A stretch of 64,000 bases of DNA from Amphiscolops sp. MND2022. Taxonomy: Eukaryota. The position numbers were made by a program, and so were the translations under genes. The notes beneath the pieces are model-generated. The model saw only the letters and a program-made list of their open reading frames with translations, was not told the origin of the DNA and searched no databases. Positions 23 through 30,100 of this stretch are shown here, piece after piece (the stretch's first letter is position 1; each line of letters begins with the position of its first letter). The stretch spans positions 100,750,001-100,814,000 of the forward strand of contig OZ076410.1 of assembly GCA_964187785.1 (NCBI GenBank), given 5' to 3'.

Positions 23-2152
23 ATGAAAATCCGTGAGGACGTGCAGACTTTACCCATTGAGATAAATGTTCAATCTGCGGGGGTATCACAGGAAGAACAA
101 ATATTCTATACGAATGATGATGACGAGACAGAGGAACAGTTTTGGGCAAGGAAAGAAGCAATCAGGAAAAATCCAATGACTGATGAGCCCACTGTTACCA
201 TAGAAACTCTGTCAACCAATTTGGTCAAACAACAATCAGACATCCAAGTCCGATTAAAGAAAACAAACCAGATAATCATCGAGCAGTCCAAAGATGCAGT
301 ATTGCAACAATTGAAGGCAAAGCTCCTTCATGAAGACTATTCAGAAAACATACTGCAACAGGATGCCCGCTATAGACACTATGCAAATAATCTGGAACGA
401 ATTGTACTCAAGGACGAAATCCTGACGAGGCAATATTTTGATGAAACAGGGAATGTTAAATACCATCAAATTTTGCTCCCGCAACACCTACTTCGAGAAT
501 TGCTTCAATCCCTTCATGGAACAGCGCAAAAACATCCCGGGATTTCCAAAATGTTGCAGGAAATTAGACAGAGGTATTACTACCCTAGCATGGCTAGGCA
601 CGTCAAAAAGTGGGTAGAAGGGTGCGAACAATGTGCCAGAGACAAGCGAGTCCCTAACGCCACAATCACACCTGAATTGCTCAATTTGCTCGAATGGGAC
701 CTTGGACCTGAAGACGCCATGCAGATTGACTTACTGCCGAACCTTCCCCCAAGCGGAGGATACGAAAACGTCCTAACGGCAATCGATGTATTTTCCAGAT
801 ATTTGTTTGCTTACCCTCTCACGGACGCATCAGCAATCAATGTAGCAAAAGTGCTCATTGATATCATGACCAAACATGCATACCTACCAACAACTCTTAT
901 TACTGATAAGGGTACTGCATTCACTTCTACGATTATTGCGGAGGTTACGCAGATTCTGGGCATCACACTCAAATGTGCAACGACAAAGCACCCGCAAACA
1001 ATTGGCAAATTAGAGCGGACACATGCCTCATTAAAGACAAATCTCAAAATGGCATGTGGGGAATACCGCCGACAATGGCATAAATACTTGCCATTAGCAG
1101 TACTGAATCATAATACAAGTTACCATGCCAGCATCGGCTGTGAACCAACGAGAGTATTTCATGGCCGAATTCCCTACAATATCCTAGATCATAAGCTTGG
1201 GAATAACCCAAACGAAAAAATCAGCCCTACAACCGAATTTGCTGAAGAAATTCAGAACAGGACGAAAACCCTAATAGACAAAACGAAGCAAAATATCATG
1301 CAGTCATATATCAAATACGAGGAATATTATGACCGCAAAGCGAAAGCTGCTCCATTGAAAGAAAATGAATTCTGTTTTGTCTTACAGCCGAAAGCGGACC
1401 ATCAAGGATCGAAAATCCCATTCCGCGATTATCGTTGGGTTGGTCCATTCATAGTGCAAAAAGTCTTACCAAATGAGAATTACATTGTACGACGGCTTAA
1501 TACAAACAAAACTCAAATATTACATCGAATTCGCCTTAAAAAATTTGTCCCCAATCAACCGCTTGAGGACAATTTCCGAGAGCAACGCTTGCAGCCAGAC
1601 GAAGAAATAGTTATTCCGCAGGATGACTTATACACCATAACGTGGGAAACCGACTTTGGCGAGCAGCTAACTATACGAGACAACGAAGCTATTCCGACTA
1701 GCTTACCGAATGGCGAACAGCCGAGTACGACACAAATTAACAATGACGCAAACGAGAGTGACGCGGATTATATAATCACGCGAGAAACGAATCAAGACAA
1801 TACGGCACACAGCCGGAATGACCGCTTAGGTGACAACGTCACAAAGAGAATTCAAAATAATGATGCAAATAGAAATAAAGGATCTGATTGGCCAAATCCG
1901 GCCGCTAACCCAAATACTCAAGAAAAATCTTTACCGAGTACAGCAAATGCACCGGAAAATCATGAAATTTTGTCAGAAAGAAATCCGCTAAATGAAAACG
2001 ATGCACAAAATTCTCCAAATAGGGGGGATGATATTATCGTGCCCGAAATATCTGAAAACGATGCTAGAAATGAAAGCCTGAGCCCTAGAGGAGGAAAATA
2101 TAACCTCAGGCCTAATCCCAACCCGAACTACTCAGAAGACTATAGATACTAG
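23..2152 (+). CDS. Gypsy Pol C-terminus: integrase (HHCC zinc finger, DDE core, GPF/Y module)
   Basis: LHGTAQKHPG...CEQC zinc finger; QIDLL / DVFSRYLF / LITDKGTAFTS / IGKLERTH catalytic core; RWVGPFIV motif; 709 aa open frame. Confidence 0.95.
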   Translation: MKIREDVQTLPIEINVQSAGVSQEEQIFYTNDDDETEEQFWARKEAIRKNPMTDEPTVTIETLSTNLVKQQSDIQVRLKKTNQIIIEQSKDAVLQQLKAKLLHEDYSENILQQDARYRHYANNLERIVLKDEILTRQYFDETGNVKYHQILLPQHLLRELLQSLHGTAQKHPGISKMLQEIRQRYYYPSMARHVKKWVEGCEQCARDKRVPNATITPELLNLLEWDLGPEDAMQIDLLPNLPPSGGYENVLTAIDVFSRYLFAYPLTDASAINVAKVLIDIMTKHAYLPTTLITDKGTAFTSTIIAEVTQILGITLKCATTKHPQTIGKLERTHASLKTNLKMACGEYRRQWHKYLPLAVLNHNTSYHASIGCEPTRVFHGRIPYNILDHKLGNNPNEKISPTTEFAEEIQNRTKTLIDKTKQNIMQSYIKYEEYYDRKAKAAPLKENEFCFVLQPKADHQGSKIPFRDYRWVGPFIVQKVLPNENYIVRRLNTNKTQILHRIRLKKFVPNQPLEDNFREQRLQPDEEIVIPQDDLYTITWETDFGEQLTIRDNEAIPTSLPNGEQPSTTQINNDANESDADYIITRETNQDNTAHSRNDRLGDNVTKRIQNNDANRNKGSDWPNPAANPNTQEKSLPSTANAPENHEILSERNPLNENDAQNSPNRGDDIIVPEISENDARNESLSPRGGKYNLRPNPNPNYSEDYRY

Positions 2153-2380: not shown

Positions 2381-5300
2381 TTAGTTTTTAGAACTGCTAG
2401 CTGAAGATTCGTCGGCAACAGATGAAGTCCTGGAACGCGAAATGGCCCTCTCCAATCGTCTTCGCTTGCTACCACTGGGAAGCTTTACTGCAGAAGCATC
2501 AGGGATGGAAGAAGTATCTGCTATAGTGGGACTGCGGAATTGAAACTCTGACCCAGAAAGCATAGAGCGGTAAGATGTAACAAGGGTCTTGTAGATAGCG
2601 GTCCGGCCGAAACCGTCCACAAAAGGCCAAGGGTCATAATCGGCGGCGAAAGCGGATTGCCCGAAAGAAGAAGACAAATGCTGGAACTTCTCAAGCAGGG
2701 GCTCACTGCAGCAGGCCAGTAAGGAATCAGGACCCGAAGTCAAATAGCTCTGACAGGGTAAGATCACATCTGCCAAACGGGATTGAAGCCCTGTTGTATC
2801 AATTCTCCCAAAGGAAACTGGGGGGTATTCAGGACTGACGGTAGTTATGCAGAGACAGCTTAACTTAAACAGGTAACAAAGATGATCATGGGACTGGAGG
2901 AATTCCAAATTCATAAAGAAATCAATGAGATCAGGGGGATCCTTGGCTGAGCTAAATTCAGCGGAGTGATTGTTCCGGAGGTGGTCCAATAGGGCAACAT
3001 ACTCGTCCCGGCAAGCTGACTCGTTGAATTCCGAGACCCAGAAACGCAGCTGGAATGTGGAGTACAGGCAATCAAAATGGCGCAAAGCAACATCCACTGG
3101 CCGTTTGAATAGAATGTATGGGTCGAACGCAGCCAACCCCTTGATAAGGTCGGAACTTAGCTCAGTATGTTGAAGAACCTCTGACAACAGGAACTTGATG
3201 TAACTTTTGGCGCTTGACGTGAAATCTGATTTGGCCTGGTCGGCAGTCTTACTGATCGCTGCTTTACTGGGCTTCTTGTTGAAGTGGAGCCCAGCTGCCT
3301 TCAAATTGCTTGCTGTGGTGACTTTGCCAGCGATCTTGAGACGCACTAGAAAGTCCTCGTCTCCCATAAATGTGCCCTGATTGAGCTGGAAATTCATCAG
3401 TAGGAACCAGGCGTTCTCGAGTGGCACTGTATCTGGCTGGAAGATACGGAAGCAGAGGCGGTTGATATATTTGCACAGCTCGCCACAAAGGAAGAAGGAG
3501 GCATCACGTCTCTGGCTCAAATTGGCGACGAAGCTGGTGACATCTGAAATTCATAAATTAATGGCCCTTAATAGGACAACAGACCGAAGGGATCTTAGTA
3601 GATTGAGAATACTCACAATCGCTGACCAAACGTTGGAAAAGCTCCAATTTGACAGCAAAGAAGTTGTCCATGATGAGGGACCATTCAAAGCTCTGGACCT
3701 AGAAAGAAAGCAATGTGAACATCTTGGAACTTACCCAACAACGATAGTACAAGGAAAGCAATTACTACGATTCCCTATGTAAAGAAAATACCACTTGAAG
3801 TTCATAACCTTATTGTGTACTCCTTGATTCTCTTGACGAGATGAATGGGCTGTGAGATAGTGGAGGATTGTTTTCCACTTCTTCGACAAGATTCGGCAAA
3901 GCTCAGGAATTTTCTCCACTTCCAGTCTGCAGGTCGTGATTGCCTAAACAAAGTGATCCTTAGGATTGGAATTCCAACTGAAGTTACTTACCACCCCCTA
4001 CCAGTGTAATGTAAATTAAGTGCGTAAACTAGACTCACTCGGACAAGTTCAGGTGACTCCGAAACCCAGTCTTCAGAAAGGCATCCTCCGAGTGAGACTA
4101 TGAGGCTTTGGAGAACAGAAAACATGTCTATATGCCCAAACACACTATAGTTCCTCTTGTGCATCAAGGTGCGCAAGTCGAGGAGTTCGAACCGAAAGCA
4201 ACTTTGAACCCCACGTGGGTAGGCTGGGTGATGGTCCACCGTCTTGATCAGGTCAACAGCACAACCCGAGATCGCAACTATGTCAGGAGCAGTATATACA
4301 ACGGATAGCAATCGAGATAAGGAGCCCAGTTCCTCTGTGAGTCCAGCGCCAGTGAGGCCACTTCTGCAGATGAACAGACGGCAGAGTTTCGCTCCTTCCC
4401 AGAATCGCAGGGACATAAAGCCCCCCCCCCTCTTCTCAAACTCAACTGCGAAATGCTGAGAGGCGGAGACCTGTTCAGCCACTTCCTCCATCAGGCAATT
4501 GAAGACATGTTGGAAAATGGCCTGAAATGGAACAAAATCAGATCGTTAACATGACGTCACTTTCCTGACCCTTCCCTACCAACTAATCCAACTTTTGGAA
4601 AACAACTGAGGGATCTTACCATGATGTGGTCCTCATTCCAATTGAAGTCCTGGAAAGCCGACTGAAACCCAGTGTAGCTCCCAACTCGCGACCACAGTTT
4701 TTGAAGCAGCGCCAGATCACCAGAACCTTGAATGAAGTCTCCCAAGAGACATATCTGTGTTCGCAACCGGGACTGTGGAGTAACGGGAGCGGAAGTATGG
4801 CCTTGCAGGTAATCCTCGTAGAATGGATTTCTTTCTCCAACGTCAACGAGCTCTGTATGTATGAATCTGGGTAGCTCATCAGCGAGTTCCTTCTTGCTAA
4901 GGATCTTGCCATTCCTCCCCCTAACGCGATGTTGAACCTTCCCAGTAACAGGATCCACCGTCTTGAGGTGTTCATACCTCCACCTCTGGTCTCGGCGCAG
5001 ATGCTTTTCGGTCCTGTGATGGCGTAGGATTTCAACGGTACCCTTGGTTTTGATGCTGAAATTCTTTTTACACATGTGGCACCATACCATGTGTGGATTG
5101 TGGAGGGGATCAGAAGGCCCAGAGATAAATGATCTTGTCCACCCAATTTTGGAAAGGAACTCTCTCATGGGTACCCCTCGCCTGGAAACTTTTTTCACTT
5201 TGACCGGTCTTGCGGTTGTAGTGCTTTTCCGAGACCTCTGGGTGGGTGTCCTATCTCGGATCTCAGAGAGGGTAATGTCGAGGCTACTCCTTCCACCAGT

Positions 5301-12174: not shown

Positions 12175-15100
12175 CTGAAAAAAAACGGGAAGAAATAACG
12201 AGAAACCCTAGTTTGGAAGAAAATTAAATCTTGCACTTATCTTGCAAGTTTCTTACAAAATATGTGTTATTTTTGCAAGTTTCTCGCAAGCCGATGTCAA
12301 TCCTGCAAGAATCTTGCAAGGCCATGCAAATCTTGGAAGATGATAAATTAGAACCTTACATCACAGTTATAATAACGTAGTCAAAAACTTCACCAATTGT
12401 CGAAAATGGTCATTTTTCACTGATTCTTGGCCGGTTTTTCCGAAAACAATGTACGCATATGCTCGATTTGGGTTCGTTCGGCCTGATTTCAAAGACTTCA
12501 TCGTGTAGAGAATTAAAAAGGGTTATTTTTTTTCAATGTACATCGAAACTGTGATTCAAATGTTTGTAAAGACAGTTTGGAAGAATAATGCTTTGTGATA
12601 GAATAGTATATCTTCAGTAGTATGTGAATAGAATAGAATAGTACATCTTTTTTTTTGCAACACATTTTCAAGAATTGTATTTTTTCTCAACCTGGGTTGT
12701 AAACAATAACGAGAAAAAAAACAGGAAAAAAGTAAATAGAATGACCAAAGTGTAGATAGTAAATACTATACCAGTGTACTTACATACAGTTCGATATAAC
12801 TATTTAATAACAACAATTTGGTGCATTTTCTTGAAGATTCACAAAATAAGACACAGAATGTTTATGATGCAAAATCTTGTTAAAATTTCGAAATGATGTA
12901 GTACTCCTTTGCGGCTAATGATGAGTCTACTTTTAAAATTAAAAAAGTATATATAAATAAATATTGTAAACCTTGGTAAGTGGAGAAAAATTTGCAGATT
13001 ACTGCATTAATATCACAATGTTAGACATTGCTCGTTGTAAAATGGAATCTTGCAAATGAATGCACGTCAAGAGATACCCCGCGGTGGTGCGTTTCAAAGA
13101 AAAAGGGGAAAGAAAAGTCCAAAAACTTATTTTTAGCATATTGCGGCTAGTAAGTTAAAAAGAAGAGCTTGTAACGAGATCTAAAAAATCCTGAAATTTT
13201 CAAGATTCTAGCTACATTTTCCATGAACTAGGTGTAACAAGGGCTGGTAATGTATTGAGTGCCCCTTTTCAGACCTCATCACAGATGGCTATAAAATCAC
13301 TGACCAGAAAGACCAAAGGTCACTGACCGAAAAGACCAAAGGTCACTGACCGAAAAAATCAAAGGTCACTGACCGAAAAGATGAAAGGTCACTGACCGAA
13401 AAGCTCCTTGAGTCCATTGTCGCTCTCGACGCTGATGTCGAAACCTCGCTCAGAGTTGGTCTCTGACCCGTCATCGTCACTATCAAGAGGATCCTTCTTG
13501 GCTCCTCCCCCGCCTCCTGTAGTCGTAGCTGCTCCCTTGTGGCTCTTTTTCCGGTCAGTGTCCACCTGAGAGACAAGGAAAAAGGTCATCAAGGAAGGTC
13601 ACGGGTCAAAACAATCCGCGAAGGTCACGGGTCAAAAATATCCGCGAAGGTCACGGGTCAAAATATTCCGCGAAGGTCACGGGTCAAAATAATCCGCGAA
13701 GGTCACGGGTCAAAACAATCCGCGAAGGTCACGGGTCAAAAATATCCGCGAAGGTCACGGGTCAAAATATTCCGCGAAGGTCACGGGTCAAAATAATCCG
13801 CGAAGGTTACGGGTCAAAATAATCAGCGAAGGTTACGGGTCAAAATATTCCGCGAAGGTCACGGGTCAAATAAATGCGCGAAGGTCACGGGTCAAAAAAT
13901 CCGCGAAGGTCACGGGTCAAAATATTCCGCGAAGGTTACGGGTCAAAATATTCAGAGAAGGTCACGGGTCAAATAAATGCGCGAAGGTCACGGGTCAAAT
14001 ATATGCGCGAAGGTCACGGGTCAAAAAATCCGCGAAGGTCACGGGTCAAATATTCCGCGAAGGTTACGGGTCAAAATAATCTGCGAAGGTCACGGGTCAA
14101 AATATTCCGCGAAGGTTACGGGTCAAAATATTCCGCGAAGGTCACGGGTCAAAATAATGCACAAAGGTCGTCACGGGTCAAAATAATGCGCGAAGGTCAC
14201 GGGTCAAAATAATCAGCGAAAAGTTACGGGTCAAAATAATCCGCGAAGGTCACGGGTCAAAATATTCCGCGAAAGGTCACGGGTCAAAATAATCCGCGAA
14301 GGTCACGGGTCAAAATGATGCGCGAAGGTCACGGGTCAAAATATTCCGCGAAAGGTCACGGGTCAAAATAATGCGCGAAGGTCACGGGTCAAAATAATCA
14401 GCGAAAGGTTACGGGTCAAAATAATCCGCGAAGGTCACGGGTCAAATAATCCGCGAAGGTCACGGGTCAAAATATTCCGCGAAAGGTCACGGGTCAAAAT
14501 AATCCGCGAAGGTCACGGGTCAAATAATCCGCGAAGGTCACGGGTCAAAATATTCCGCGAAAGGTCACGGGTCAAAATAATCCGCGGAGGTCATGGGCCA
14601 AAATAATGCGCGAAGGTCACGGGTCAAAATGATGCGCGAAGGTCATTGGTCAAAATAATCAGCGAAGGTCACGGGCCAAAATAATTCCCGAAGGTAGCAG
14701 GTCAAAATAATGCGCGAAGGTCACGGGTCAAAATAATCAGCGAAGGTCACGGGCCAAAATAATGCGCGAAGGTCACGTTGCGTAATGGTACATGGGATGC
14801 ATTATTGAATAGTGATGAATTATATATGATACAATCAACTCCGGATAATTCGGATCTTCGTTAAATTCGTCTTCATCTGAAACCCCCATTTCGCGAGGAC
14901 GAATATCATGCTGTAAATTCGTATTTGTCAAAATAGGCCCCTCCGGGGCTCAGTACTATTTCTGCTTTAATCTTTATTTTTTTTGAAACAAAAAAATCAA
15001 TAATAAAAGAATCATATCTGGAATACCAATACACTCCTGTTTAATCATTACTTAGAGCACAATTAATCCCTGTACAAGTTTACACCGCCTTCAATTCTTC

Positions 15101-18100
15101 TCGGACTAAAGAAAATATAACTACTAAGCGTAGACGACGTTTCGCATTCGCATTTGAATGCAGGCGAAGCTCTCAACGAACGAATAATTAACACTCATTC
15201 GCTTCATCTCAATAATTCGGGCAACGAAAGCACAATTACGAACATTCGCTCGCTTCATCTCAATGACGTCAGCATACGAATGGATAATTACCACTCGCTC
15301 GTTCTATCGCACAAGAATTGAATTTAAATCTCTCGCTTACACTCACTGCCGAACAAAATATCTGAATTATTCAGATCGTCCGAAAAATTGTTCTGAAAAA
15401 AAAGTACACGTTTCCAGATTTCAATAATATTCCTGCTAAAGCAGAAATATTAAAAATTAGTACTGTTTTATTCAGTCCCTAGCGATACGAATTAAGAGGA
15501 TTCAACTGCAATAAGCGCTTTAGCGGCCGCCCATGAATGTTTCAGCGATTTCATTAGCGATTCAAATAAGCGGTAACTAATAGAATGTCCAATATCAACT
15601 TTTCCTCAGAGTATACTCGGAGTTTCAAAATGATTTTCAAAAAAATCCAACTCTTACCATTGTAACCCACACAGTAAAAAAATTCCGGTCTGATTTTCTG
15701 GCATAACTAAATTAGGTTATAATTAAATTTTGGAAGATACTTGAAGTCAAAATAGTTTGGAGGAAAACTTTCTCAGCGAAATAGCGATTTTTAAAATAGC
15801 GGTTTAGCGATTAGCGGAAAAATTAGCGATGTCATAACCCTGCTCAAGAAAGTCACGGGAGGTCACAATGGTAAAAGCCAAGAGGTTCGTTGGGAGGTCA
15901 CACGAGTAACCTTTGTGTACACGGTATGACATTTCGATTGCATTGGGTCAGCATTTTTAAAGCAGAAGTATGGCCAACGTTGAGTTAGATAAAAACTAAA
16001 ATAGTCATATGGCAAATGGTTCGCCCCATAGTTTTTAGAAAATAAAAACACGTGGCTATTACAGTGACGGCTCAGGAAAAACAAGCCGGGACCGGCCCAA
16101 GTCGGCGCCATATCTAAGGCTCAAAAATTGTAAAAAGACTTCAAAGTGTCAAGTATTCTCTTCAGCACCCGCATGAAGAAAAAAATGTTCCGATTTTTTT
16201 TCGAAATTTATTTTAAAGTCTCCGGTAAGTCGCATAGTGCCGAGAAATGTAAAAGGGGCCCTTTGGGAGTTTTTGAACATCCATTCTTTTGCAAAATAGA
16301 AAAAAAAAGACGGGACCCTTTGGAGACATTAAAAAATTGCGAAAGTCTCACAAAGCCGAAATAAGCTGCACAAAAAAATTTTCTGTTTTAGTCGGCGTTT
16401 TTCTACGAAAGCGCCGACTAACAAGCCACTGTAAGAGTTAAGTAAGGTAATTCCATTTTGCTTCGAAAAACGCAGGGCCAAAATGAGTGCCAAAAAGTTC
16501 GAATTGACACGAGAGGGTGAACTCTATTTCGATTATTCGAAAGTGGGAAAGAACTGGACCGGACTGGACTGGACTACTGACTTGTGTGGACATGAGCAGC
16601 TGGATGATGTGCAGAATGGTGTTCTGGACCTCGTTTATGTGCTCGAACAGCTGCACGTATCTGTCCTGCACACTAGCCAGCATCTCCCGCGAGAAGTCCT
16701 CTGGATTCCAACACCTGCAACACACAACAACAGTGACTCTGTGTCAGCACATTCTTGCATCTTTTCTGTTAACCACCAATGGTGAGCGCGGAAATGTTAA
16801 TTCCCCCCACCCTGTATCAGCGACGAGTTTCAGTTGCAGTTAGAGTTATAAAATACTGCAGTTTGATTGGTTGTTACTATTAATTCAATTATAATTTCTT
16901 TTGACCGCTTAACTGGGGGGGGATTAAATCGGTGAGGGGGATTAAATCGGTGAGGGGGATTAACAGAAAAGATCCCATTCTGTGGTATTCAAACGTTATT
17001 TGCGGTAATCAGCGCCAGTTGACACCAAAGTTTCTATTATTATATGGTTCCATTGGGACTGTTTTACATATAAAGCATTATAAAGCATAAAAATCCAAGA
17101 CGTCAAAAGTTGAGTTCGGTTTGACCGCATCGTTTAAGGTAGAAGACGCGACAACGACCTTCTCAAGGATGCATTTATTGAGTTTACCAAATAGATTGGG
17201 TACTGAACGAAACTGCAACTTGTACGCTTTTACCAGCGAATGTTTCGAAACACCGCAAAACACGAACAAAAAAATTTGAATCCGTGACATACCGGCTTTG
17301 TACGTAGCTTCCATATTCTTTCCTAAATGTGAAGATCCCCAAAATACAAACTCTAGAACGAATAATATCTCTAGAAGTGTGATTACAGTAATTACAAAGT
17401 CAAATCTTATTCTTTGTATAAAAGAACCGACATTTGAAACACGCTTTCGATATACATTGACAAACACAAAACCCTCTTGAATTTTGTACACAATGAAGAC
17501 TTCGAAATCAGGCCGAACGAAACTAAATTGATCATTGGCGTACATTGTTTTTGAAAAAAAAATGGACAAAATCAGGAAAAATGATCATTTTCGACAATTA
17601 GTAGAGCTTTTGACCATGTTATCATAACTGTGATGCCTTTCAAGATTCTAAATTTTCATTTTGCAAGATTTGTGTGGTCTTGCAAGATTGTTGCAAGACT
17701 GATATCGGCTTGGAAGAAACTTGCAAGATAAGTGCAAAATTTCAATTTCCTCCAAACTAGGGTAAGGAAAAGAAAAATGATTGCAACAGGTCCTAAGAAC
17801 ATTTTTCCACAAAAGAGAACCACTTGGCCTTGATAACGTATCAAAGGCAGGTTGATTCACAGAGTGAGTAACGAAACGTAGGCTGACCTTGAGAACGCGA
17901 GTTGGTGGTCAAACAGCACCATGTCTCTGATGTTATCCAGGGACTTGTCGATCCGGGTCTCGATGAGTTTGAGAACTTTGCGAGCCAGCTTGCGAAATCT
18001 CTGGATCGCCGAATGGACCTGAAGAAGCAACACACGGAAACATTAGGAGGGAATTAGAGTTATCGGGCATTTTCTGCCAACATCTTCAAAGATTCAGACA

Positions 18101-21100
18101 TTTTTTTGCGAGACCTTGCAAGATCAGACATTATTTTCTTCCAATAATGCTTTGTCTTCCAAAATCCTGGAAGTCAAATCCGACAGATTTTTGCAGAAAA
18201 TGTATGGAAGTTCGACTGGGGATGATACGGTGGGATCAAATCACAGTGGGAGATAGGTGAATGATCAATTTACAACAGACAATGTAAAAAAACCACTGAA
18301 TTTCCTCATATTATGACAAACACAAAACATTTCACATGTACGAGGACAGTGTAGAATTTAAATTTAATGAAATAACAGGACAATTATTGTTGATTAATCA
18401 TTATTTAAACCGGTATTCACTCCAACATTTTCGGCTATATTGCGGTCTATCGAGCTGACTTACAAACTTTTCAGTAAAATATTTCTTTAGTCTCTTCTTC
18501 AGTGTATCGTACGTTTGATTTCCATTTTTCATTTTATCAGGCAAGAAGACGATCTACAGAGGTACTACTCTCTTGAACAGACTGTTTCTCATTTGTTCAC
18601 TTCTTGTATGAGCATGATAGTACAATTTCTTGGTTCTTTCTTGACTTGTTATACGGGCGGTTTTTATACTAAGCTGGGGAAAACATGAAGCTGCATGTTC
18701 GTTGATTGTCCAAAACGAACAACTAATATTCTAAACTTTGATACGGAAATTGACAGATCATGAGGTGTCTGGTCGGACCTTTTTAGATTTTTCAGAAAAA
18801 AGTACCCGAATCTTTTACAGAGAGGTTTTTAGTCGGCGCTTTTCTGGGGAAAAGTGCCCAACTCTTACAGTGGCCAATTTTTTTTTTCGTCAGACTACAA
18901 TCTCACTCTGATTGGGCCACTTTTCTTACAATCGAAACTACTAAAACTACTAGCATAAAAGGCCAAGTCCTGTCAGCGGAAATTACTGCAAAAGGGTCCC
19001 GCCTTTCATATTTTACTATTTTACCGTAGCCTACAAAACCGGACGAGACTAAAGGGTCCCCCCTTTCAATTTTTTTTCGGCATTGTGCGACTTTTTTTCA
19101 AAAAATTTTTAATGTCTCAAAAGAGTCCCCCTTTCGAGTTTTTTGATACTTTGCAACAGAATTTATGTTAATAAAGCCCAAAGGGTCCCCCTTTTACATT
19201 TTTCGGCACTATGCGACATTTTCTGAAAGAAAAAAAAATTCAAGTTTTTTTTTAAAAAGTCTTTTGCGCATTTTGAGCCTTAGATATAGCGCCGACTTTA
19301 GACGTTCCCGTCTTGTTTCTCCCAGCCACAACAAAGCTCACACTGACATATCTAGGTTTTGATCAGTTTTGGGGTGCTCTGTGGTTAAATTGCACAGTCA
19401 ATTCTACATTTTCCCACACTTTTGATATAGAATTTCGATTGTGAAAACAAAAGACGGGTGGTAGACATTTCAAAATTTCGGTACTGTGGCACTTTTTTCC
19501 ATTTTCCCTAATGTTGCTAAATGCCCGTCTCCTCTCAGAAGTTTCTGACAGACTTTGCTAACACATGGAATCAGAAAGAGAATCTTACAATATGGTTCTA
19601 CCTCTAGATTCCAGAAACTGTGACATTTCATTTTTATCAGCTCCTAAACTCTCGTGGCTTGGCACTATTCAAGTCTTACCAGGAGCACAAATCTCGGCTA
19701 TTCCCGAACTTTTTCTTCGCATTTTTTACGAAATGCCAGAAAATAAGTTTTCGGCAGCAGAATTGATAACCAAGAAGTTAAAACACTTCGAAACTACAAC
19801 TAGAGTAGCATTCAAAAATATCGCAATTATATTGCTTAAAATGGCAAATTTCAAATCGAAACATTTTGCAAACTGTCACGAATACGAACATTGCTAGCCA
19901 GGAATGAATTTTTTCAGGTAGATTTTTTACAAACAGCCCAAATTCTACTTCAAATTTTCTAAAATTTTCCATTTCCATCTTTCTCAATATGGGTCATAGA
20001 ATTTTCAAACAAACATTTTTATAAACTAGACGAAATTCTAAAACACGTTGGTAACTTTGTTGACTAGCTACATGAACAGTGGCCATTATTCGCAATAGTT
20101 TGTTGAAACTGGAATAACATTCTATGGGAATAAAATCGCTCGAATGATTTCCCGTATCCACAACTCCAATTGTTTGCTTCATGTCAGATTCCTTCGATCG
20201 AATTTCTGGCGGAGTTCCAGAAAGCATCGGTTGCTTTGGCCATTGATTTTCATTAACTCCGAGAAACTCAGGACCTTGCCACCAGAGGTTTGAAGATATG
20301 AAATCCTTTACCTCCATTCCACGAGAAGATAGATCAGCTGGATTTTGTTGCGACGGAATGTGGTTCCATTTTGCTCTAGGCATTGATTCTTGAATCTCGG
20401 ACACTCTGTTTGCAACGAATGTTGTCCATGTGCGTGGTAGTTGATTCAGCCATTGTAACACGATTGTCGAATCTGTCCATGCATGTGTAGAATTGATGGT
20501 TAATTTCGAGGACTGTAGAGACTCAATGACGATACTCATCAATTTGGTTCCCAGTTGTGCTCCACATAACTCCAATCGAGGCAAACTGACTGTTTTCACA
20601 GGTGCCACACGTGTCTTTGCAACCAGAAGTCTCGTTAAAACTGAACCATCCTTAGATTTGATTCTGCTATACACGTTCGCAGAGTAAGCCTTTTCACTTG
20701 CATCTGTGAAAAGATGTAGTTGAAAGTCTTCAATTTCGCCATCAGGCAAAACACAGCGTGGAATGTGAAAACCTTCGAGTTGTTTTAAGCTGGTTCGCGC
20801 TGATAGCCACTCTTCTTTGATGTCAAATGGCAATTCAGAGTCCCAATCAATTCCGAGAATCCAAAGTTTTTGAAGCAGACCTTTATAGCGAATAATTACA
20901 GGACCAAGCCATCCACTAGGATCGAAGAGTTTCGATACGTCTGATAACAAAGTTCTCTTCGTATGTTGTTTGATAGCATCCAGAGTCACATTGAATGTGA
21001 AAGTATCAGGGTTGGGGTTCCAACGGATACCTAGTGTCTTTATATGGTAGTCTTTATCAAGAATTTTTGACGATTCTTCTGTTTCGCGTAATTTTTTAGG

Positions 21101-24100
21101 TAGGGAGAGCGTTATCGATGAGTCACTGCTTGTCCATTTGCGTAGTTCAAATCCATGCTTCTTCAATGCGGCAATCAATTGATGTACTAAAGATGATGCT
21201 GTGTCTTTATCTGGTGCACCTCCAATGAAATCATCGACGTAGAAATCATTGAAAATGGCCAATTGGACTTCTTCATCGGTAGACTTCTTTCCCACTTCCG
21301 GGAGACATCGTATCGAATGATAGGAAGATGACGCGATGCCATAAGTGACCCTCGTCATTGGCAGATGTTTTAGTGGTTCGGAAGGACTATCCCGCCACAA
21401 AATGCGATGAAAGTCTTTATCTTCATCGGCTAATGCAATTTGACGATACATCTTGGCAATGTCACCGGATAAAGCCACCTTGTGTAGTCTAAAACGCAGA
21501 AGTGTCGAGTACAAGTCTGGCTGAAGTTTTGCACCCACCATCAAAGATTCATTCAAGGACTGCCCGGTGCTCGTTTTCGCTGAGCCATCGAAAACAACTC
21601 TTAATTTGGTTGTCGTTGATTCCTCCTTGAAAACGCAATGATGTGGCAAATAATACAGTTGAGATGGATCTTTGTCTATTTCATTAAGTGGTACTTCTTC
21701 TATAAGTCCCAAATCCATGAATTCTCTGATGAAAATTCTGTAACGTTCATGGAGTTCAGGGTCTGCTATCAAACGTCGTTCTAGTGACATGAATCTACGT
21801 CGTGCTTGTGTGAAACTTTCGCCCAGTTTACTAACTTCTGGCTTGAATGGCAGTTTCACCTTGAATCGTCCGTCTTCTGCTTCTTGTGTGGTTTCAAGAA
21901 AATGTTGCTCACACTGCATTTCTTCTGCTGTTAGTTGCTTCGGAGAATGCACTTCCTCAATCTCCCAAAATCTTCTCGAATCAATATCCGTCTTCAGAAT
22001 GGTTACTGAATTCACTGCGGAGGTCGTTTCTCGTGGTAGTTTTCCTGACACAACCCATCCAAAAATGGTGTTCCTCAAATGGAGGCCATTCTCCTCTTCC
22101 AATTTGCCATCCAATACTATGCTTTCGTAGATATCCGATCCCAAAATGATATCAACTCGTCTTGACATCAGGAAGTCTGGATCAGCCAATTTTACCGACC
22201 TTGCATGCAAGCATTGTGCATTGGTGATTGGCTGAGACGGTAGAAATTCAGTCAATTTTGGTCTTACCAGAGCCTTCAAATCCAGTTTTTGGAAATGAGT
22301 AGGGCGAATCTCAAAGTCCACAGAAGACGTACTCACAAATTTAGAACTCACTATGCCGTTCAATTGAAATTGGTGTTCTCTTGAGTTTAAGATTTTGGGC
22401 GCACTCTTCTGTTATCATGCTCAATTGAGCTCCACTGTCAAGCAATGCTCTGCATTGAATTATGGATCCATCGGAGGCAACTACAGGAATTACTGCAGTG
22501 GGAAGGAGAACTGAATTAAATTTCACTGACGAATGGTGTAGATTAGTTTCTTGTATTGTTTTCGACTTGCTGTTGTCGACTTTGTCTGCATGTAACCACG
22601 TGTTGTGATTTTTGTGGCATTTCTTGCACGTCGATGTAGAAGGGCAATCTTTTGTCATATGACCCTCCCCCAAGCAATTGAAACAAAGCTTGGAAGTGTA
22701 TGCTAGATTCCTTTTTTCTGTCAGTGACATTTTCTGGAACTTTTGGCAATTGAAGATCCGATGTGCACCTGAACACGCTGGACAAATTGATGCTGTAGTT
22801 TTATAACTTTGAAATGGATGCGGATTTTTCGGAGAAGTGTGGAAATGTTTTTCCCTCTGCGGTTGTTGATTCTGTTTCATTATATCTGATGCTTCTAATG
22901 CTCGTGCCCGTTTTGCGATGAACTCTCGCAATTCGTTGATTTTCCGAATATTATCCCCTGGGCTATCCAACTCCCATTGCCTTCTTGACTCTGCGTCAAG
23001 TTTTTCAGAGATAATATGTACCCAATAGAAACAATTGAGTGAAGTGTCAATCTTCATGGCCTCCATAGCCATCAAATTTTCGTCCAGCGTTAGTTGTAGA
23101 CGCCTCAAACCTTCTGCAGATTCAGTGCGTAGGCTTGGCGCTTGATGAATTGCCTCCATATGAGCCTTTAGAATCAATCGCTTGTTCGAATACTGATTTT
23201 CAATTAATTCAATGCCAACCTGGTAATTGGATGCTGTCAATGGCAAATGAGCCAATAGTGTTGCTGCTTCGTCCTTTAAAGACGCCTTCAAATAGTTCAA
23301 TTTCTGTATATCGGGTATTGTGTCGTTTTGGTCGACAGCTGCAATGAATTGATCATAGAAGGGAATCCAGTCCTTGTATCGCCCCGAAAACTTCGGTATG
23401 TCAAACTTTGGGATTTTGACTCCCATTGTTCTACTGGTTGTTGGCTGTGGAAAGTGAGAATCAATCGGTTGGGCTGTTGATCTGTCGATGAGACCTTCAA
23501 TTTCCTTTATTTGGGTCTGAAGTTTCACTTCAAATTCATTTCCTGCTTGGAATTCAATATCAAACGCATCGTCACTTTCTTCTGATTTATCAAGGATGAC
23601 TGTGTTGAGTTGTAGGGCGAAAGTCAATTTCGCTTGCATCACTTCAAGCAATGCTCTGAGGGTTGCTAGGTCTTCATTTGTTACGTTGACCGGTGCTTTG
23701 TCTGCAATAGCATTGATTTTGATGGCATTTTTTGTTATAATGCCCGAAATTGCGGACCTTGATCTACGCAGTTGCTCTATAGTTTTAGTTTCAAGTGACA
23801 TCTTGATCGATTTCGAACAGTAATCGTACTTCTGAGTCTGTTCCCGGGTCGTATAGCACCAATAATGTTGCTGGATAGCGTTGACTTTGTAAATTGGTTT
23901 ACAAAAGAAAAATTGAATTTAATCTCAGCATGAAAGTTTCATTCAGTATTGAACTTGCAGTGACGAAAATTTACAAACAACTGAAAAAGGGTGATCAAGT
24001 TTAACAAATTATAATTTCATTCACAATATCACGTTTTCATTTTGTGCGATTGCAAATTAATCAAGTATTGGTTTAGAAAAGTTGGTCTTGACATCTTGAG

Positions 24101-27100
24101 GGTCAACATACCGAGCCCCTTGAAGGATGCACATTCTTCAAATGAGATGATCTGTTCGGTACATTAATGATATAATTCTCTTCCAGATCAGCAATGTCAG
24201 ATTTGGATTCATTGATTCAACTGTGCAGTTCCAGCGAGGGAATGAAAGATTTGGGTTGGAATTCGCTTGCAACAATAGATGGCACTAATTGCTTTGATTG
24301 GAATTCGATCAAAGAGGAGGCGCATAATAGTAGTTTAGATATATTTGATGATGTCTGGATTTGCCAACCAATTGTTGTCCGCAATCAACGTCTATTTAAA
24401 TTTGATGAAGAATTTTTGCGAGGTGTCCAAAAATGCACCAATAAGCGCCAATTAGCTGCAATCTTCCGAAAATTCAAATATAATAATGCCACAAAGGAAA
24501 CAAAAAAAAATAAACCCAGTTGAAGATTTCTCCACATCCTTTGCTAGTTCATTAGATATGACAGGACTGAGCTTCTACACTGCACCTAGTCATGTCAAAG
24601 GCGCTCATTCCTCAGCAATTATTGGCGTTGGACGTTGGTTCACTGATGGTCACGTAGAAGAGGGCGGGGACATATCTGTTTCTCTAACTCCCATCGGCAG
24701 GAAATTGTTCATGATAGCCAAACGCAGTGCTGCATCAAGTAGATTATTTGCTATGACTTCCACGATCGAGTCTTTCGTCAGCTGGGTATTGAAGGGTCCA
24801 ATATTACCTTGTGAGAAAAATATTTTCTATCACATCACTGATGTCTCTGATATGATAATTCAACCATCTTTGTGCGCTCATTCAGTCCTGACTATTTCAA
24901 CTGGATCCTTTCTTGTTAGTGGTTGGGAAGCTAACGATGTTACGGACAGGCATTTAAAATCCCAGTTAGTCACCAAATATTGCCCTGGCATTTGTGATGA
25001 AGTCCTGAGAGTAGGTTTGAAGAAATCAAATCCTCAAAAGTGTTCTGAAGCTCTTGCAACTGCTAAAAATTCCAAAACAGAGGCAATCGGACAATTGGTG
25101 TCAATGTCGAACAGGAAATTCTCCAAAAAGAGTCCATCTAAAAGAGGCCGGCCATCTGTTTCGAAAAAACAGAGAATGTTGAATAATTTGAGAGATGTAC
25201 GCATGCAATTTCAGGAACGGTAGCAGCAAAGAAAAGGTTAGTGGTTGAGTAGTTTAGGTCAGTCTGAAGTGTTCAATCGATTGAAGTAATACATTCACTT
25301 AATTGCAGAATATGTGGCATACAGATTGCTTTCACCGAACAAAAAGCTGAATGCTAAAAATATAAAATCAGCGTCTGTGACTGGTAAAGACCCAAAGGAA
25401 AAAGACCAGTCGCTGTAATTTAACAAGTGAGTAATGCTCTATCACCGGTTTTCCTTTTTCTCTATCTCTCTGCTGTACGATAAGAAGGCGTTCTTTCCCG
25501 CAGAGATGATCCAGAGGCAATTTGCAGAAAAGAGTGTCTTTTTCAGTAATAAAACTGTCAGATATTAATTGATAATCTTCTCAGTGCCAATTGAAAGGGG
25601 TGAATTTCAAAAAATTTGCCAATTTTGATGGCTGCAGATAAATTGCTTCCAATATGCTCGTAGGCTCGGCAATCGTCAGTACTTTAATTGTTCGGTTCGA
25701 TTTTTTAGAATTTCTTTTGAAAACAATGATTTTTTTGGGCTTTTTTGGGGTTGTCTGGGGTAGAAATAATAGGTTATTTTTTCAATGATTGTTTTCAATT
25801 CTGAATAAGAGTGGGTTCTCCATTCATTGACTGAAATCAATGCATGCTTTCCACAGGAAGCTTCCGAAGTTTCACTATAGGTCGAATCAGGAATCCAGTG
25901 CCTACTTTCAACTTCGCAACTCTGTTGATTTCGTCATTTCCACAGTATAATTTTTCAATTCTCGCCAACTGCCATTTCAGCGGTGGTAAATTGTCTTCAG
26001 CAATCAGGACTAAGTCACCTTCTGAAAATTTGGGACCTGAGTGGAGCCATCGTTTACGCACTTGAAGTGTCACAAGATAATCACGATGCCATGATTTCCA
26101 AAAAGATCGTTTAATCCGTTCCAGCAGCTTGAATCTTTGAGACAACGATGTTTTTGTCCATGTTGTTCATCATGTTGGGAATGTCAGACGCTGCTCTTCC
26201 TAGCAAAAAATGCGCTGGGGTGATTGATTGTAAATCGTTGGGGTCATTCGACATTGCTGCTAGTGGTCTCGAGTTAAGAATTGATTCAATCTGTATGACT
26301 ACTGTGTTCAGTTCTTCGAAGGAAAGAATCTGTAAGCCGACTGTTTTTCGCAGGTGACGTTTTAGGCTTTTTACGGATGCCTCCCACAATCCGCCAAAAT
26401 GTGGAGCACGAGGTGGGATTGTTTCCCATTCAATTCCTTCGTGGGTTACAAACCTTCCCAAAAATTCGTTGCTGCAAGCCAGTGAGAGTAATTCTTGAAC
26501 CTTTAGGATATCGTTCCTTGCTCCAATGAAATTCCTTCCATTGTCACTGAATATTTTCTCAGGAAGCCCGCGACGTGCTGTGAATCGTTTTATAGCAGCG
26601 ATACATGCTTCTTTCGTGAGGTCTCCCACCAGCTCTATGTGCACCGCTTGTTAAATTACTCACTCGTTAAATTACAGCGACTGGTCTTTTTCCTTTGGGT
26701 CTTTACCAGTCACAGACGCTGATTTTATATTTTTAGCATTCAGCTTTTTGTTCGGTGAAAGCAATCTGTATGCCACATATTCTGCAATTAAGTGAATGTA
26801 TTACTTCAATCGATTGAACACTTCAGACTGACCTAAACTACTCAACCACTAACCTTTTCTTTGCTGCTGCCGTTCCTGAAATTGCATGCGTACATCTCTC
26901 AAATTATTCAACAACTTTTTTTTATACTTGTGACAGTTTATAACATATTTGGTTTTGAATTTTATTTCAAGTTATCGAGTTGCGATATTTTAGAACGCTA
27001 CTACAGTTGTAGTTTCTAAATGCTATCATTTCTGGTGTTGAAAACTTATTTTCTGGTCATTTCCTTAAAATAGTTTCAGCACGCAGAAAAAATTCTGGGA

Positions 27101-30100
27101 TTAATTAGTTGTAACCTTGTAGAGGTATGCGTCGATGTTCATACTGTGCCATGTGATGGTGAGCCAGCCGGGAGAGAAGATGGCAATCATTTTGTTGACG
27201 TGGCCTCGGAACAGACCCCCCATCTGGGCGGGAATCAGGGCGGTGACGTCATGGAAGTCGGCGATGAGACTGTCGAGTCTGGACTTGTAGTTCTTGTACC
27301 GCGTCTCATTGTGCAGAATCTTCAACGCCGACTCGGGCAGCTCCATGCGCATACGGTGCATGTACTTCGCTTCCTGCAGAATTTCGTATATTCTACAACA
27401 AGACGGGAACAACGTCTAAAGTCGCATTTTCTTCATCTAAGGCGGCTCAAAAAGCGCAAAGTTTTTGAACCTGTAAAAGGGGGACCCTTCGGGCTTTTTG
27501 AAAATCCCGTTCGTTGCAAAATATCAAATAAATTGAAGGGGGACCCTCTGGAAACAAAAAAATCGAAAATTATCTGAAATTTTTCGATTTTTTTTAATTT
27601 TCGAAAAAAAACGAAAAATTAGAATTTTGAACAGTCTCATAGTGCCGGAATACATAAGAGAAGAGACTCTTTGGGCTTTTTGGCACTTTAGCTTGCTGCA
27701 AAATATCAAAAAAAATTGAAGGTGGGAAAATCGAAAAAAAAGTCGCACAGTGCCGAAAAAAAATGAAAGAGGGGACCCTTCAGTCTCGTCCGCTTTCGCA
27801 AATACTCGAAAAAAGTTTCTGGCTAAAGCAAGGACTCGAACCCGTGACCACTGGGTTCACCGTAAACCGAGCAAAGTCTGTACTAAAAAGTGGTACATAC
27901 ACGATGGGGTCTGGTCTGACAAAAAAAATAGCCACTGTAATAGTCGGGCTCTTTTCACAAGAAAAGCGCCGACTAAAAACAAACAATGCTTGAAAAGTTG
28001 GCAAAACTATCTAGGATCGAATTGCGGCCCAATCTGGCGCGCTAAAGGGGGGCTTTGGGATTTTTCAACATCCATTCTGTCGCGAAACTGTCGAAAAATT
28101 GAAGGGGGACCCTTTGGAGTAATTTATTTCGAAAAAAAGTCCCACAATGTCAAAAAACTGAAAAGGGGACCCTTTAGACTAGCCCGGCACTGTATGTTAC
28201 GCGAAAAAAAGGAAAAATTTTTGGTTCAGTTCGCTAGGCCAAATTATTCAATTTGGGACCATAATATTTTGTAGAACTTGTAGAACTAATTTGGTCAGTT
28301 CGTGTGGATTGAAAAAAAGTCACTAGTATAGTCGCGTTTCACTTCATGAAGCGCCGACTAAACCGAATATAATTGAAGACAAGGTTGAAAAAATATTTAG
28401 GTATATTTTGGAAGAAAACTACTTTTATAACTATGACTCCCTTGAAACATAAGTATTTTCATTGGAAAAATATATATATTTATCCAATTTTAGCAACAAC
28501 GTTATCAACATTTTTAATAATCCGTAAACGTTTGTTCGCAAATAGGAAGACTTGTTGTTCGAAATGCATTGGCAACACTTGTTTTCTGTGATCGTCAAGT
28601 GTCAGCTTTGCACGACTGAAGAGACGCTCTACAATATTAGAAGTGCGAGAAAACATTGCAATGCTAGCTATGAAAAATATTTCTTCTGAACAATTACTTC
28701 TTCTAAGAATAGTATTCAACAAAAAAATATTTCAAGTTTTTCGGAGCCGTGAAAATATTTTATTTAAATTCAAATATATTTTTTACAACCATGTGTGAAG
28801 ATCATTAGCTTCATGTGTGTACAATTCAAAATTTCAATAGTTAAACTAGTTTTTAAAAGATGATATATCGTGAGCTCGTTTCTCTTGAAAACATGGGCAA
28901 TAGATAGTTTGTAAGAACATTGAAGCACATCTACTGAATTAACCTACAGTCAAAAGTAATTTGAGACTTCGCTTGACCGTAAAGCCATTACATATATTAC
29001 AACCTTCAAATTTGACATTGAGGCGCTCATATTATCTAAATTACTCAGCGTCTATCGGATAATTTATTCTTTTTTTTAAAAAAAAAACGAAAAATCAATC
29101 ACCGATTTCCTTCCGTGAAACTCAAAACTCAAACTTAAACACCAATATATATTTTCAATACTATCCAAAATTTGGCGGTGGAGGTTCGAAAATATTGCGC
29201 TATATCCAAATTTTTGACGTTATATCCGAAGTATATTGCGGAATAGAATTGATCAGAATTCTTTAGAAAACCAATCTCTATTTTTCGTTTGTGTGGCACC
29301 CTATGGTACGATCCAGTGTATTGTACAGGATATGCCATTATACGAAAAATTATACGAAATCCCCAATTTGTTATACGAATCACATGTTATACGAAGATAT
29401 CATTATGATACGAGTTATACGGAGAATCGCTTTTCAGCCATTTTGCGTCGATTTTCCCGTAACTGGCTGAAGAAGTTTTTGAAAATTATGAAATTTTTGT
29501 GCTGAATTTCAAATGAAATGCATTCTAAAATGGGTAATAGGCTTTGCGGGATTCGGAAAGAGGGCTATTGCAATATCCTTTTTTGGAAAAATTAACACTT
29601 TCAGATAGAAAAAAGATCCAAAAATTGTACCCCATGCCTTTATATGATACAAAAGGCGAATTATACGAATACACGATATACGAAACCTTCCCTTCGATTA
29701 TACGATCACACGTTATAAAAGGAACTCAGTATACTAGACCGACAAATTCTTCCGCCAACGGGATTCAACAATTTATCAGAATATGTTCAATTCCTAACTG
29801 CAACAACCCAATCCTGTCTGGAAGAATGTGTTGATGAAATGAAAATCAAAACGTGAACGCTTTGGAAAGTAACTCGTGTCGTGTGCTTTTCTGTTCAGTC
29901 TACATTTCGAATACATTTGAAGCTGCTGAATGAAAAATCGAATCTTAGTCAACGAAGAAAGTTGACTAAGAAGATAACGACAACAAAGTCGGCACAGAAA
30001 TTTAACTCGAATTGAAGCTTGGAGAAATTTACTAAGAAACTGTTTATTAATGATTGAAACTCAACAATTTATCAAAGATATTACAATGAGATTTACAAAA

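Follow-up and report, generated by a model that had tools for sequence, protein, structure and literature searches.

The antisense JmjC-like gene and its BEL/Pao carrier

We analysed a 64,000-nt stretch of the genome of Amphiscolops sp. MND2022 (GCA_964187785.1, contig OZ076410.1, positions 100,750,001 to 100,814,000 of the forward strand), hereafter the window. Between the integrase end and the long terminal repeat (LTR) of a BEL/Pao element, and on the opposite strand to the element, lie two overlapping ORFs of 109 aa (24194-24523) and 245 aa (24486-25223) that together represent a broken copy of a 348-aa gene (Table 1). The ATG at 24194 is 86 nt from the LTR. The ORFs contain the motifs FTDGHVEEGG, GRKLF, FVSWVLKG and QPSLCAHSV, and T, H, E, K and H stand at H-3, H, H+2, H+17 and H+76; in the intact protein these are T150, H153, E155, K170 and H229. 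The position of the ORF, its motifs, the spacing of the five residues and the distance to the LTR had been described in the original prediction, and its observation of an antisense, JmjC-like ORF within a BEL/Pao element is confirmed.

Table 1. Features of the window element and its antisense gene (window coordinates)
Position	Strand	Feature	Basis
24194..24523	+	N-terminal piece of the JmjC-like gene; codons 1-103 match the intact copies, then the frame is lost	Identical in register, up to the A run, to the intact 348-aa ORFs of genomic copies C1120 and C11
24495..24503	+	A9 homopolymer; the extra A (aligned at 24502) causes the +1 frameshift	All seven other copies have one A fewer (A8)
24504..25223	+	C-terminal piece of the JmjC-like gene, with the predicted double-stranded beta-helix core (TDGHVE, K, CAHSV) and the basic tail with KRGRP; ends at a premature TAG (25221-25223)	TAG is CAG in all other copies, whose stop lies at 25239-25241
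24166..25239	+	1,074-nt segment holding the whole ORF, bounded by an acceptor-like ttctcttccag (ends 24186) and a donor-like AG/GTTAGT (25236/25237)	Exactly absent from a sister BEL family with 84-89% identical DNA (sequence L020 joins 24165 to 25240 directly); splice signals read from the sequence, without RNA support
23866..24108	-	Single LTR of the window copy (243 nt, TG..CA)	Matches both 100% identical LTRs of the full C11 copy (L053 2340-2582 and 9516-9758)
24109..24125	-	Polypurine-tract-like stretch next to the LTR (inferred)	Read from the sequence (sense AAGGGGC.CGGTA before TGTTG)
23843..23861	-	Primer-binding site (sense TGGTGCTATACGACCCGGG), 4 nt from the LTR	Read from the sequence
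22341..23801	-	BEL/Pao gag	DUF1759 E 3.4e-33; weak zf-CCHC hit (E 0.0015, 19.0 bits, under the 20.8-bit cut-off)
19994..22363	-	BEL/Pao pol (protease, RT, RNase H); homology to the other copies stops at 20058	Peptidase_A17 E 1.9e-49; weak RVT_1 hit (E 0.00038, 20.7 bits, under the 29.6-bit cut-off)
25837..26649	-	Integrase C-terminal part, displaced to the other side of the LTR relative to gag-pol	DUF5641 E 6.2e-29, weak rve hit; about 582 nt of the integrase N-terminal part missing compared with the other copies
26655..26913	-	259-nt inverted duplicate (99%) of 25177-25435, next to the rearrangement break	Found only in this copy; the junction at 26913 is also present in contigs of sequencing runs X1 and X2

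The original prediction requires correction in several respects. It held that the A9 run was the only lesion and that the fused protein was 342 aa. However, the window copy also has the premature TAG, so the natural ORF is 348 aa. The original prediction also suggested that the extra A may be an assembly error, a possibility that our data neither support nor exclude. Moreover, the window element is rearranged, with gag-pol (23801 to 20058) on the far side of its single LTR; that this copy is a dead, rearranged one had been missed.

Linkage of the gene to the element

To explore whether the gene is a fixed part of the element, we compared the eight genomic copies. The gene is at the same place in all eight, antisense between pol and the 3' LTR, and two copies are intact; the other six, including that of the window, are broken. 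In the full C11 copy the ORF lies inside an element with 100% identical 243-nt LTRs, an AATAT 5-bp target-site duplication and a primer-binding site 4 nt from the LTR, and C11 pol adds an Integrase_H2C2 domain to the BEL/Pao signatures in Table 1. A nested insertion of another transposon was rejected, since the segment has no TIR, LTR, other repeat or target-site duplication and is fixed in all copies. An antisense 379-aa ORF at 2381-3520, beside a Gypsy integrase in the window, was considered as a further family member but is unrelated.

Predicted fold and active site

All protein work used the natural intact copy L013:4655-5698:- rather than a consensus, mended or ancestral sequence. Sequence searches gave little. 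Pfam returned no JmjC or Cupin_8 hit for the ORF pieces or the intact protein, even at E 10, and no PHD, CXXC, F-box or other Pfam domain in the 348-aa protein. Searches of PDB sequences with phmmer and with an 11-sequence profile returned only snurportin and an amidotransferase at E above 1. Only 3 of 44 relatives gave weak Pfam JmjC hits (best E 2.8e-4). The genome also holds multi-copy JmjC frames that are Pfam-positive; alignment of the family profile by hhalign with two Pfam-positive JmjC frames of this genome was in the right register but weak (E 0.0066 and 0.064).

An AlphaFold model built from 11 sequences was unusable (pLDDT 36.7). We therefore built a deeper, 44-sequence alignment from a profile search of 1.84 billion representative proteins, in which 226 clusters matched; a second, word-indexed protein search with the alignment added nothing. 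The resulting model has pLDDT 92.5 and pTM 0.86. Foldseek against the PDB ranked ceKDM7A, PHF2 and PHF8 first (E about 6e-9), and VIA-align gave Z 15.1 to ceKDM7A, 14.9 to KDM2A and 14.7-14.8 to PHF2, KDM7A and PHF8, with about 250 residues aligned at rmsd 3.8-4 A and 12-14% identity. All top hits in the PDB, Swiss-Prot, AlphaFold DB clusters and the ESM Atlas were JmjC proteins; the AlphaFold DB and Atlas searches by shape returned only JmjC proteins, with KDM2 first in the Atlas (TM 0.59 by query), and a language-model search returned JmjC clusters at 0.95. These results support a JmjC fold. The family profile hit only PHF8 in the PDB (E 0.028), with T, H, E/D, K and H in register. Among relatives, T150 is kept in 37/43 (plus 3 Ser), H153 in 40/43, E155 in 43/44, K170 in 41/44 and H229 in 42/44; in JmjC enzymes the H, D/E and distal H bind iron and the Lys and Thr bind 2-oxoglutarate.

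The assignment to the KDM2/KDM7 subtype made in the original prediction is soft. Although KDM2/7 members ranked first in each library, Z was 13.3-13.9 for JMJD5, JMJD6, FIH and UTX, a small margin, and no reliable phylogeny is possible at this level of identity. The motif is HxE, whilst PHF8, the only KDM2/7 member aligned here, has HxD (that the subfamily as a whole uses HxD rests on the original prediction).

Selection, distribution and transcription

The original prediction would have been undermined by neutral evolution, absence from other copies of the family or lack of transcription. Against the homologue in contig L060, a relative with 88% identical DNA, dN/dS was 0.22 (dS 0.29, Fisher p 8e-13). 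The integrase region of the same pair also gave 0.22, and the non-coding spacer differed at 16.6% of sites; the gene is under purifying selection as strong as that on the integrase region.

The genome holds at least 118 matches, and many divergent lineages keep intact frames of 330-420 aa. Relatives sit antisense between pol and env of LTR-bounded, Gypsy-type elements, an arrangement also seen in other assemblies, and the BEL-borne clade is sister to a Gypsy-borne one (support 100/100). This occurrence in env-bearing Gypsy-type elements had not been anticipated in the original prediction. Of the 226 matching protein clusters, the ten examined carried no functional names (one 'hypothetical protein') and had no NCBI or UniRef members.

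Four sequencing runs hold the sequence. They have uniform depth over the whole element, loose ends at the LTR edges and contigs up to 90 kb, and so look like DNA; no splice joint was seen in them, and a search for RNA-Seq found no run listed.

Interpretation

Our preferred explanation is that the ORF is a decayed copy of a real accessory gene of LTR retroelements, which in intact copies encodes a single-domain protein with a predicted JmjC Fe(II)/2-oxoglutarate oxygenase fold and a basic C-terminal tail; in this subfamily the tail carries an AT-hook-like KRGRP motif. The analysis itself establishes the fold (as a high-confidence model), the conservation of the catalytic residues, the fixed linkage to the element, the purifying selection and the close relatives in a second LTR superfamily. 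By contrast, oxygenase activity, entry into the nucleus and action on chromatin are inferred, as is expression, probably from the gene's own antisense promoter in or near the 3' LTR and possibly as a spliced mRNA, to which a 36-codon frame after 25307 might be joined. The favoured, though tentative, inference is that the protein would remove repressive lysine methylation by KDM2/7-like chemistry at or around copies of the element, favouring their transcription or integration despite host silencing. We are highly confident that this is a functional element-borne JmjC oxygenase, but the histone-demethylase anti-silencing mechanism is rather less likely than not; taken as a whole, the explanation is somewhat more likely than not. 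The original interpretation, of an element-encoded demethylase transcribed antisense from the 3' LTR to counter silencing, is thus partly supported: the evidence extends to the predicted fold, the integral place in the element and the selection.

The strongest alternative, possible although less likely, is that the protein is an active JmjC hydroxylase like JMJD6, JMJD4, JMJD5, FIH or TYW5, which would modify a non-histone protein or an RNA (for example a host splicing or translation factor, or the element's own Gag or integrase) to help the retroelement replicate. As in the JmjC-only hydroxylases, the protein has only a JmjC core; its structural scores to JMJD5, JMJD6 and FIH are close to the best; JMJD4 and PSR/JMJD6 rank 2nd to 6th in the Swiss-Prot fold search; and T(H-3) and K(H+15 to +17) also occur in FIH and JMJD6. 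However, the top ranks in four structure libraries and the only PDB profile hit belong to the KDM7/KDM2/PHF8 group, and the basic tail with its AT-hook-like motif suggests DNA or chromatin. It is unlikely that the protein works without catalysis, as a scaffold that recruits activators or blocks heterochromatin proteins, as reported for the fission-yeast JmjC protein Epe1, which is reported to oppose heterochromatin non-enzymatically (PMC7192584, PMC6624913), since conservation of all five cofactor-binding positions in 86-98% of 44 divergent relatives is not expected if catalysis were dispensable. Least likely is a useless passenger (a captured host gene fragment or nested insertion) or a role for the antisense RNA alone: although the sister BEL family shows that the element can exist without the segment and most copies are broken, broken copies are what is expected of old insertions, and this reading is disfavoured by the dN/dS, the intact frames in many lineages, the conserved catalytic residues, the shared arrangement in Gypsy-type elements of other assemblies and the lack of TIR, LTR or target-site duplication.

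A broader, speculative and rather unlikely reading is that LTR retroelements of invertebrates carry a previously unnamed family of catalytically competent JmjC enzymes, exchanged between Gypsy-type env-bearing and BEL/Pao elements, which would act as a transposon-encoded eraser of repressive histone methylation and a counter-defence against piRNA- and heterochromatin-based silencing. In this view, some patchily distributed 'host' JmjC-only genes, such as the HRJD genes linked to regeneration, might be element-borne or domesticated copies.

Transposons are mostly seen as targets of chromatin silencing, but a few fight back, including plant VANDAL elements through their VANC proteins. A JmjC enzyme kept under selection inside animal LTR retroelements, and passed between superfamilies, would be a direct countermeasure at the level of chromatin or protein hydroxylation. 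The results also show that a sizeable protein family is invisible to Pfam and recognisable only by structure, and such genes can be mis-annotated as host JmjC genes.

Comparison with known systems

Our literature searches found no paper on a JmjC gene in a retrotransposon, although accessory ORFs in LTR elements are known. The nearest solved structures, the JmjC domains of ceKDM7A, PHF8, PHF2, KDM7A and KDM2A, belong to host genes, whereas the present protein is encoded by a retrotransposon, lacks PHD, CXXC, F-box or LRR domains, and is a 348-aa protein with a basic tail. The HRJD 'JmjC-only' genes of cnidarians, planarians, Ciona, annelids and molluscs (PMC6390904) are likewise single-domain, multi-copy and patchily distributed among invertebrates, with a gene tree that does not follow the species tree; they are described as host genes closest to KDM8, are recognised by the JmjC domain, and are discussed without a TE link. 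Any relationship of these genes to the present family is only a lead.

In position and orientation, the gene resembles the antisense additional ORFs between pol and the 3' LTR of plant LTR retrotransposons (Grande gene23, RIRE2, Retand, PvRetro13; PMC7264820). These are also present in most copies of a family, with their own antisense transcription reported for Grande and Retand, but according to that review have no recognisable enzyme fold and no known function. HTLV-1 HBZ, from a 3' LTR antisense promoter (mentioned in PMC7264820), is also a protein-coding gene read antisense from the 3' end of an LTR element, but the protein is unrelated and the promoter and transcript are here only inferred. 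Additional ORFs shared between diverse retroelement types in bdelloid rotifers (PMC5408684) parallel the sharing between BEL/Pao and Gypsy-type elements, although the proteins appear to be different.

A further parallel is the AlkB-type 2OG dioxygenase (m6A RNA demethylase) ORF of Phalaenopsis orchid Ty3/Gypsy elements (PMC9289625), whose activity was shown in vitro. There too, an Fe(II)/2-oxoglutarate dioxygenase is fixed as an additional ORF in a lineage of LTR retrotransposons and is proposed to counter host control of the element. The orchid enzyme has an AlkB fold, acts on RNA and occurs in one Gypsy lineage of plants, whereas the family described here has a predicted JmjC fold and occurs in both BEL/Pao and Gypsy-type elements, in the present case in an animal.

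Organization of the BEL/Pao copy

To locate the candidate gene relative to its carrier, we first mapped the ORFs and Pfam matches of the window. Two overlapping ORFs on the forward strand face BEL/Pao genes on the reverse strand, and the motifs that the original prediction assigned to a JmjC domain (FTDGHVEEGG, GRKLF, FVSWVLKG and QPSLCAHSV) are all present.

Features of the window and of the other loci examined
Feature	Position	Strand	Remarks
First ORF of the JmjC-like gene	24194-24523	+	109 aa
Second ORF of the JmjC-like gene	24486-25223	+	245 aa; overlaps the first
Extra A	24502		A9; A8 in all other copies
Premature stop	25221		TAG; CAG in all other copies
Stop position of the intact ORFs	25239-25241		348-aa ORF
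Segment absent from the sister BEL family	24166-25239		holds the ORF
LTR of the window copy	23866-24108		single
BEL/Pao gag	23801-22341	-	DUF1759; weak zf-CCHC hit below the Pfam cut-off
BEL/Pao pol	22363-19994	-	Peptidase_A17; weak RVT_1 hit below the Pfam cut-off
Integrase C-terminal part	26644-25837	-	DUF5641; weak rve hit
Inverted duplicate	26655-26913		259 nt; 99% to 25177-25435
36-codon frame	25308-25419	+	in phase after a putative 71-nt intron
Flanking inverted copies	18825-19842 and 26964-27980		74-88%, five collinear blocks
Exon-like frame, DHC_N1	27104-27412	-	E 3.2e-18
Gypsy-type integrase	23-2152	+	Integrase_H2C2, rve
Antisense 379-aa ORF	2381-3520	-	no Pfam hit
Non-LTR retrotransposon ORF	56012-59188	+	endonuclease, RVT_1 and a PHD finger
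Tandem array	13491-14777		period about 26 nt, more than 40 units
Full copy on contig C11	L053 2340-9758		7,419 bp
Antisense ORF of the C11 copy	L053 9430-8384		ATG 86 nt inside the 3' LTR
Natural intact copy	L013:4655-5698	-	used for all protein work
Pfam-positive JmjC frame (example)	L034:1435-2055	-	multi-copy
JmjC-like frame by a DNA polymerase	L057 (G000:C2:23209000-23218900)		421 aa, intact

To establish the normal anatomy of the element, we searched the window's own genome (1.07 Gb) at the DNA level and found seven further full copies of the 24100-25450 stretch, at 96-99% identity, and one partial copy. Alignment of window 18000-29000 to these loci shows the normal order to be pol (up to window 20058), about 582 nt, then 26649 down to 23866. 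The window copy is therefore permuted, and reads integrase C-terminal part, 3' region, one LTR, PBS, gag, pol. About 582 nt of integrase, including its N-terminal part, are missing between the outer ends (20058 and 26649), and the inverted duplicate sits at the break. Contigs of two sequencing runs (X1 and X2) carry the junction at 26913, so it is not peculiar to this assembly. The circularly permuted or tandem-like arrangement could derive from a tandem pair sharing an LTR or from a 1-LTR circle.

The full copy on contig C11 has 243-nt LTRs that are 100% identical and end TG..CA, a 5-bp target-site duplication (AATAT), a PBS 4 nt after the 5' LTR, gag, a 1,407-aa pol with Peptidase_A17, RVT_1, Integrase_H2C2 and DUF5641, and the antisense ORF. 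Comparison with the LTR of the window copy shows that the ORF was correctly placed in the original prediction, on the opposite strand between the end of the integrase and the LTR.

The sequences flanking the window element on either side are inverted copies of each other and contain a short motif that recurs in the window (translated as GGPFG..F); they are probably copies of a dispersed repeat in opposite orientation. The exon-like frame beside the element matches dynein heavy chain N-terminal region 1, from which we infer that the element lies in an intron of a dynein heavy-chain gene. Elsewhere in the window, the Gypsy-type integrase is followed by a different antisense ORF that has no similarity to the JmjC-like family, i.e. 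another antisense accessory ORF of unknown nature, whilst a non-LTR retrotransposon ORF carries a PHD finger, a chromatin-reader domain.

State of the ORF in the genomic copies

Alignment of the eight copies shows two lesions in the window copy, the extra A and the premature TAG, rather than the A9 run alone as originally proposed. Two copies, on contigs C1120 and C11, have an uninterrupted 348-aa ORF; the other six have frameshifts or stops. All later protein work used a natural intact copy (L013) without any repair of the sequence.

Predicted JmjC fold and conservation of the cofactor site

Sequence methods alone failed to identify the protein. Pfam gave no hit at E up to 10, a search of PDB sequences gave nothing, and an index of 5.8 billion proteins gave only ten unnamed hits. 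However, a profile search of 1.84 billion representative proteins found 226 relatives at E up to 1e-3. In a 44-sequence alignment (A2), W148, H153, E155, G168, K170, Q223, P224, H229, V231, T233 and G243 are nearly invariant; T150 is kept in 37/43, H153 in 40/43, E155 in 43/44, K170 in 41/44 and H229 in 42/44. The A2 profile hits only PHF8 among all PDB sequences (E 0.028), and in that alignment FTegHiE matches YTDFHID, GkKlf matches GEKIF, and QPalcAHaVlT matches IPTGWIHAVLT. Three of the 44 relatives match Pfam JmjC weakly.

With A2 as input, AlphaFold gave a model with pLDDT 92.5 and pTM 0.86, whereas an 11-sequence alignment had given a pLDDT of 36.7. Foldseek against the PDB ranked ceKDM7A, PHF2, PHF8 and KDM7A first (E about 6e-9). 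VIA-align gave Z 15.1 to ceKDM7A, 14.9 to KDM2A and 14.7-14.8 to PHF2, KDM7A and PHF8, over about 250 residues at rmsd 3.8-4 A, with other JmjC groups (JMJD5, JMJD6, FIH, UTX) scoring 13.3-13.9. Searches by shape of the Swiss-Prot models, AFDB clusters and the ESM Atlas returned only JmjC proteins, with KDM2 first in the Atlas, and the language-model neighbours are JmjC clusters at 0.95.

The JmjC fold and an intact cofactor site are thus well supported. The KDM2/7 subtype is the best guess but is not secure: the motif is HxE where PHF8, the only KDM2/7 member aligned here, has HxD (the original prediction states HxD for the subfamily), and no reader domain is present. The C-terminal 50 residues are basic in most relatives, and in the close subfamily they carry KRGRP, an AT-hook-like motif, whose reading as an AT-hook is an inference.

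The genome also holds other multi-copy frames, of 206, 207 and 213 aa, that pass the Pfam JmjC cut-off (about 50 near-identical copies listed), with the motifs TPWHVDYTNTSVFYHLLHGKKEFF and MPAGMIHMV. These represent a second, Pfam-visible JmjC gene carried by some repeat.

Purifying selection on the accessory gene

To test whether the ORF behaves as a working gene of the element, we compared it with its counterpart in a BEL element with 88-92% identical DNA from another public assembly (contig L060), which carries the same ORF at the same place. Nei-Gojobori counts over the 348 codons gave 53.5 synonymous changes on 222 sites and 49.5 non-synonymous changes on 801 sites, with dS 0.29, dN 0.064 and omega 0.22 (Fisher p 8e-13 against neutrality). 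As a control, the integrase part of pol in the same pair also gave omega 0.22, and the non-coding spacer differs at 16.6% of sites. The accessory gene has been as constrained as the integrase region. That six of eight copies are now broken is the usual decay after insertion.

Relatives in other element types

The family is not confined to BEL/Pao. The intact protein matches at least 118 places in this genome at 24-64% identity, many of them open frames of 330-420 aa. At two of the loci examined (L056 and L058), a Ty3/Gypsy-type pol (RVT_1 in L056 only; RT_RNaseH, Integrase_H2C2 and rve in both) is followed by the antisense JmjC-like ORF and then by sense ORFs that look like env. At a third (L057), the frame lies about 3 kb from a type-B DNA polymerase fragment (DNA_pol_B_2), and the family may also occur in or beside Maverick/Polinton-like elements. 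In other assemblies, the homologue P0011 lies inside a 13.2-kb element bounded by 100% identical 300-nt LTRs, between pol and a 701-aa sense ORF, and the homologues P0004, P0006 and P0007 (61, 65 and 52% identical to the window family) lie beside Gypsy-type pol genes.

A maximum-likelihood tree of 25 sequences puts the BEL-borne pair (L013 and P0002) as sister to P0005 plus the Gypsy-borne P0004, P0006 and P0007. That clade has 100/100 support and sits among other Gypsy-borne lineages; the tree is unrooted and so does not establish the direction of transfer. Most sampled contexts are Gypsy-type.

A sister BEL family with 84-89% identical DNA (L020) lacks exactly the ORF-bearing segment. The gene is therefore dispensable for the element's structure, and was gained or lost as a unit. 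A degenerate, 39%-identical homologue (L021) lies about 220 nt from an integrase-like stretch of about 70% DNA identity.

Putative expression signals

The ORF-bearing segment begins 28 nt before the ATG, with ttctcttccag, and ends at AAAAG|GTTAGT; similar acceptor-like and donor-like motifs flank homologues in other contigs. These signals are read from the sequence alone: the four sequencing runs that hold the sequence behave like genomic DNA, and no RNA-Seq run was listed. If the donor at 25236/7 were joined to the acceptor-like ttgcag ending at 25307, the downstream 36-codon frame would follow in phase. That frame is open in the window family, in L060 and in the ORF-less sister L020, with an in-frame 3-nt deletion in one of the three, and starts with ATG only in the family that lacks the JmjC segment. 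Its amino-acid conservation is weak.

Interpretation and comparison with known systems

The observation of an antisense JmjC-like gene within a BEL/Pao element is confirmed, with the corrections described here. The accompanying interpretation is supported in part: structure, residue conservation and selection support the JmjC reading, whilst demethylase activity, an anti-silencing role and expression from an LTR promoter remain inferences. The window copy itself is a dead, rearranged insertion, but the gene family it represents is a real and apparently undescribed accessory gene of animal LTR retroelements.

Literature searches found no paper describing a JmjC gene in a retrotransposon. Patchy, multi-copy JmjC-only genes of invertebrates, whose tree does not follow the species tree, have been described as HRJD (PMC6390904), and a link between these and element-borne JmjC genes is possible. 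The nearest precedents are the AlkB-type m6A demethylase ORF of orchid Gypsy elements (PMC9289625), the antisense ORFs of unknown function between pol and the 3' LTR in plant elements (PMC7264820), and accessory ORFs shared among rotifer retroelements (PMC5408684). Also relevant are the TET/JBP dioxygenases linked to fungal KDZ transposons and the VANC anti-silencing proteins of VANDAL elements.
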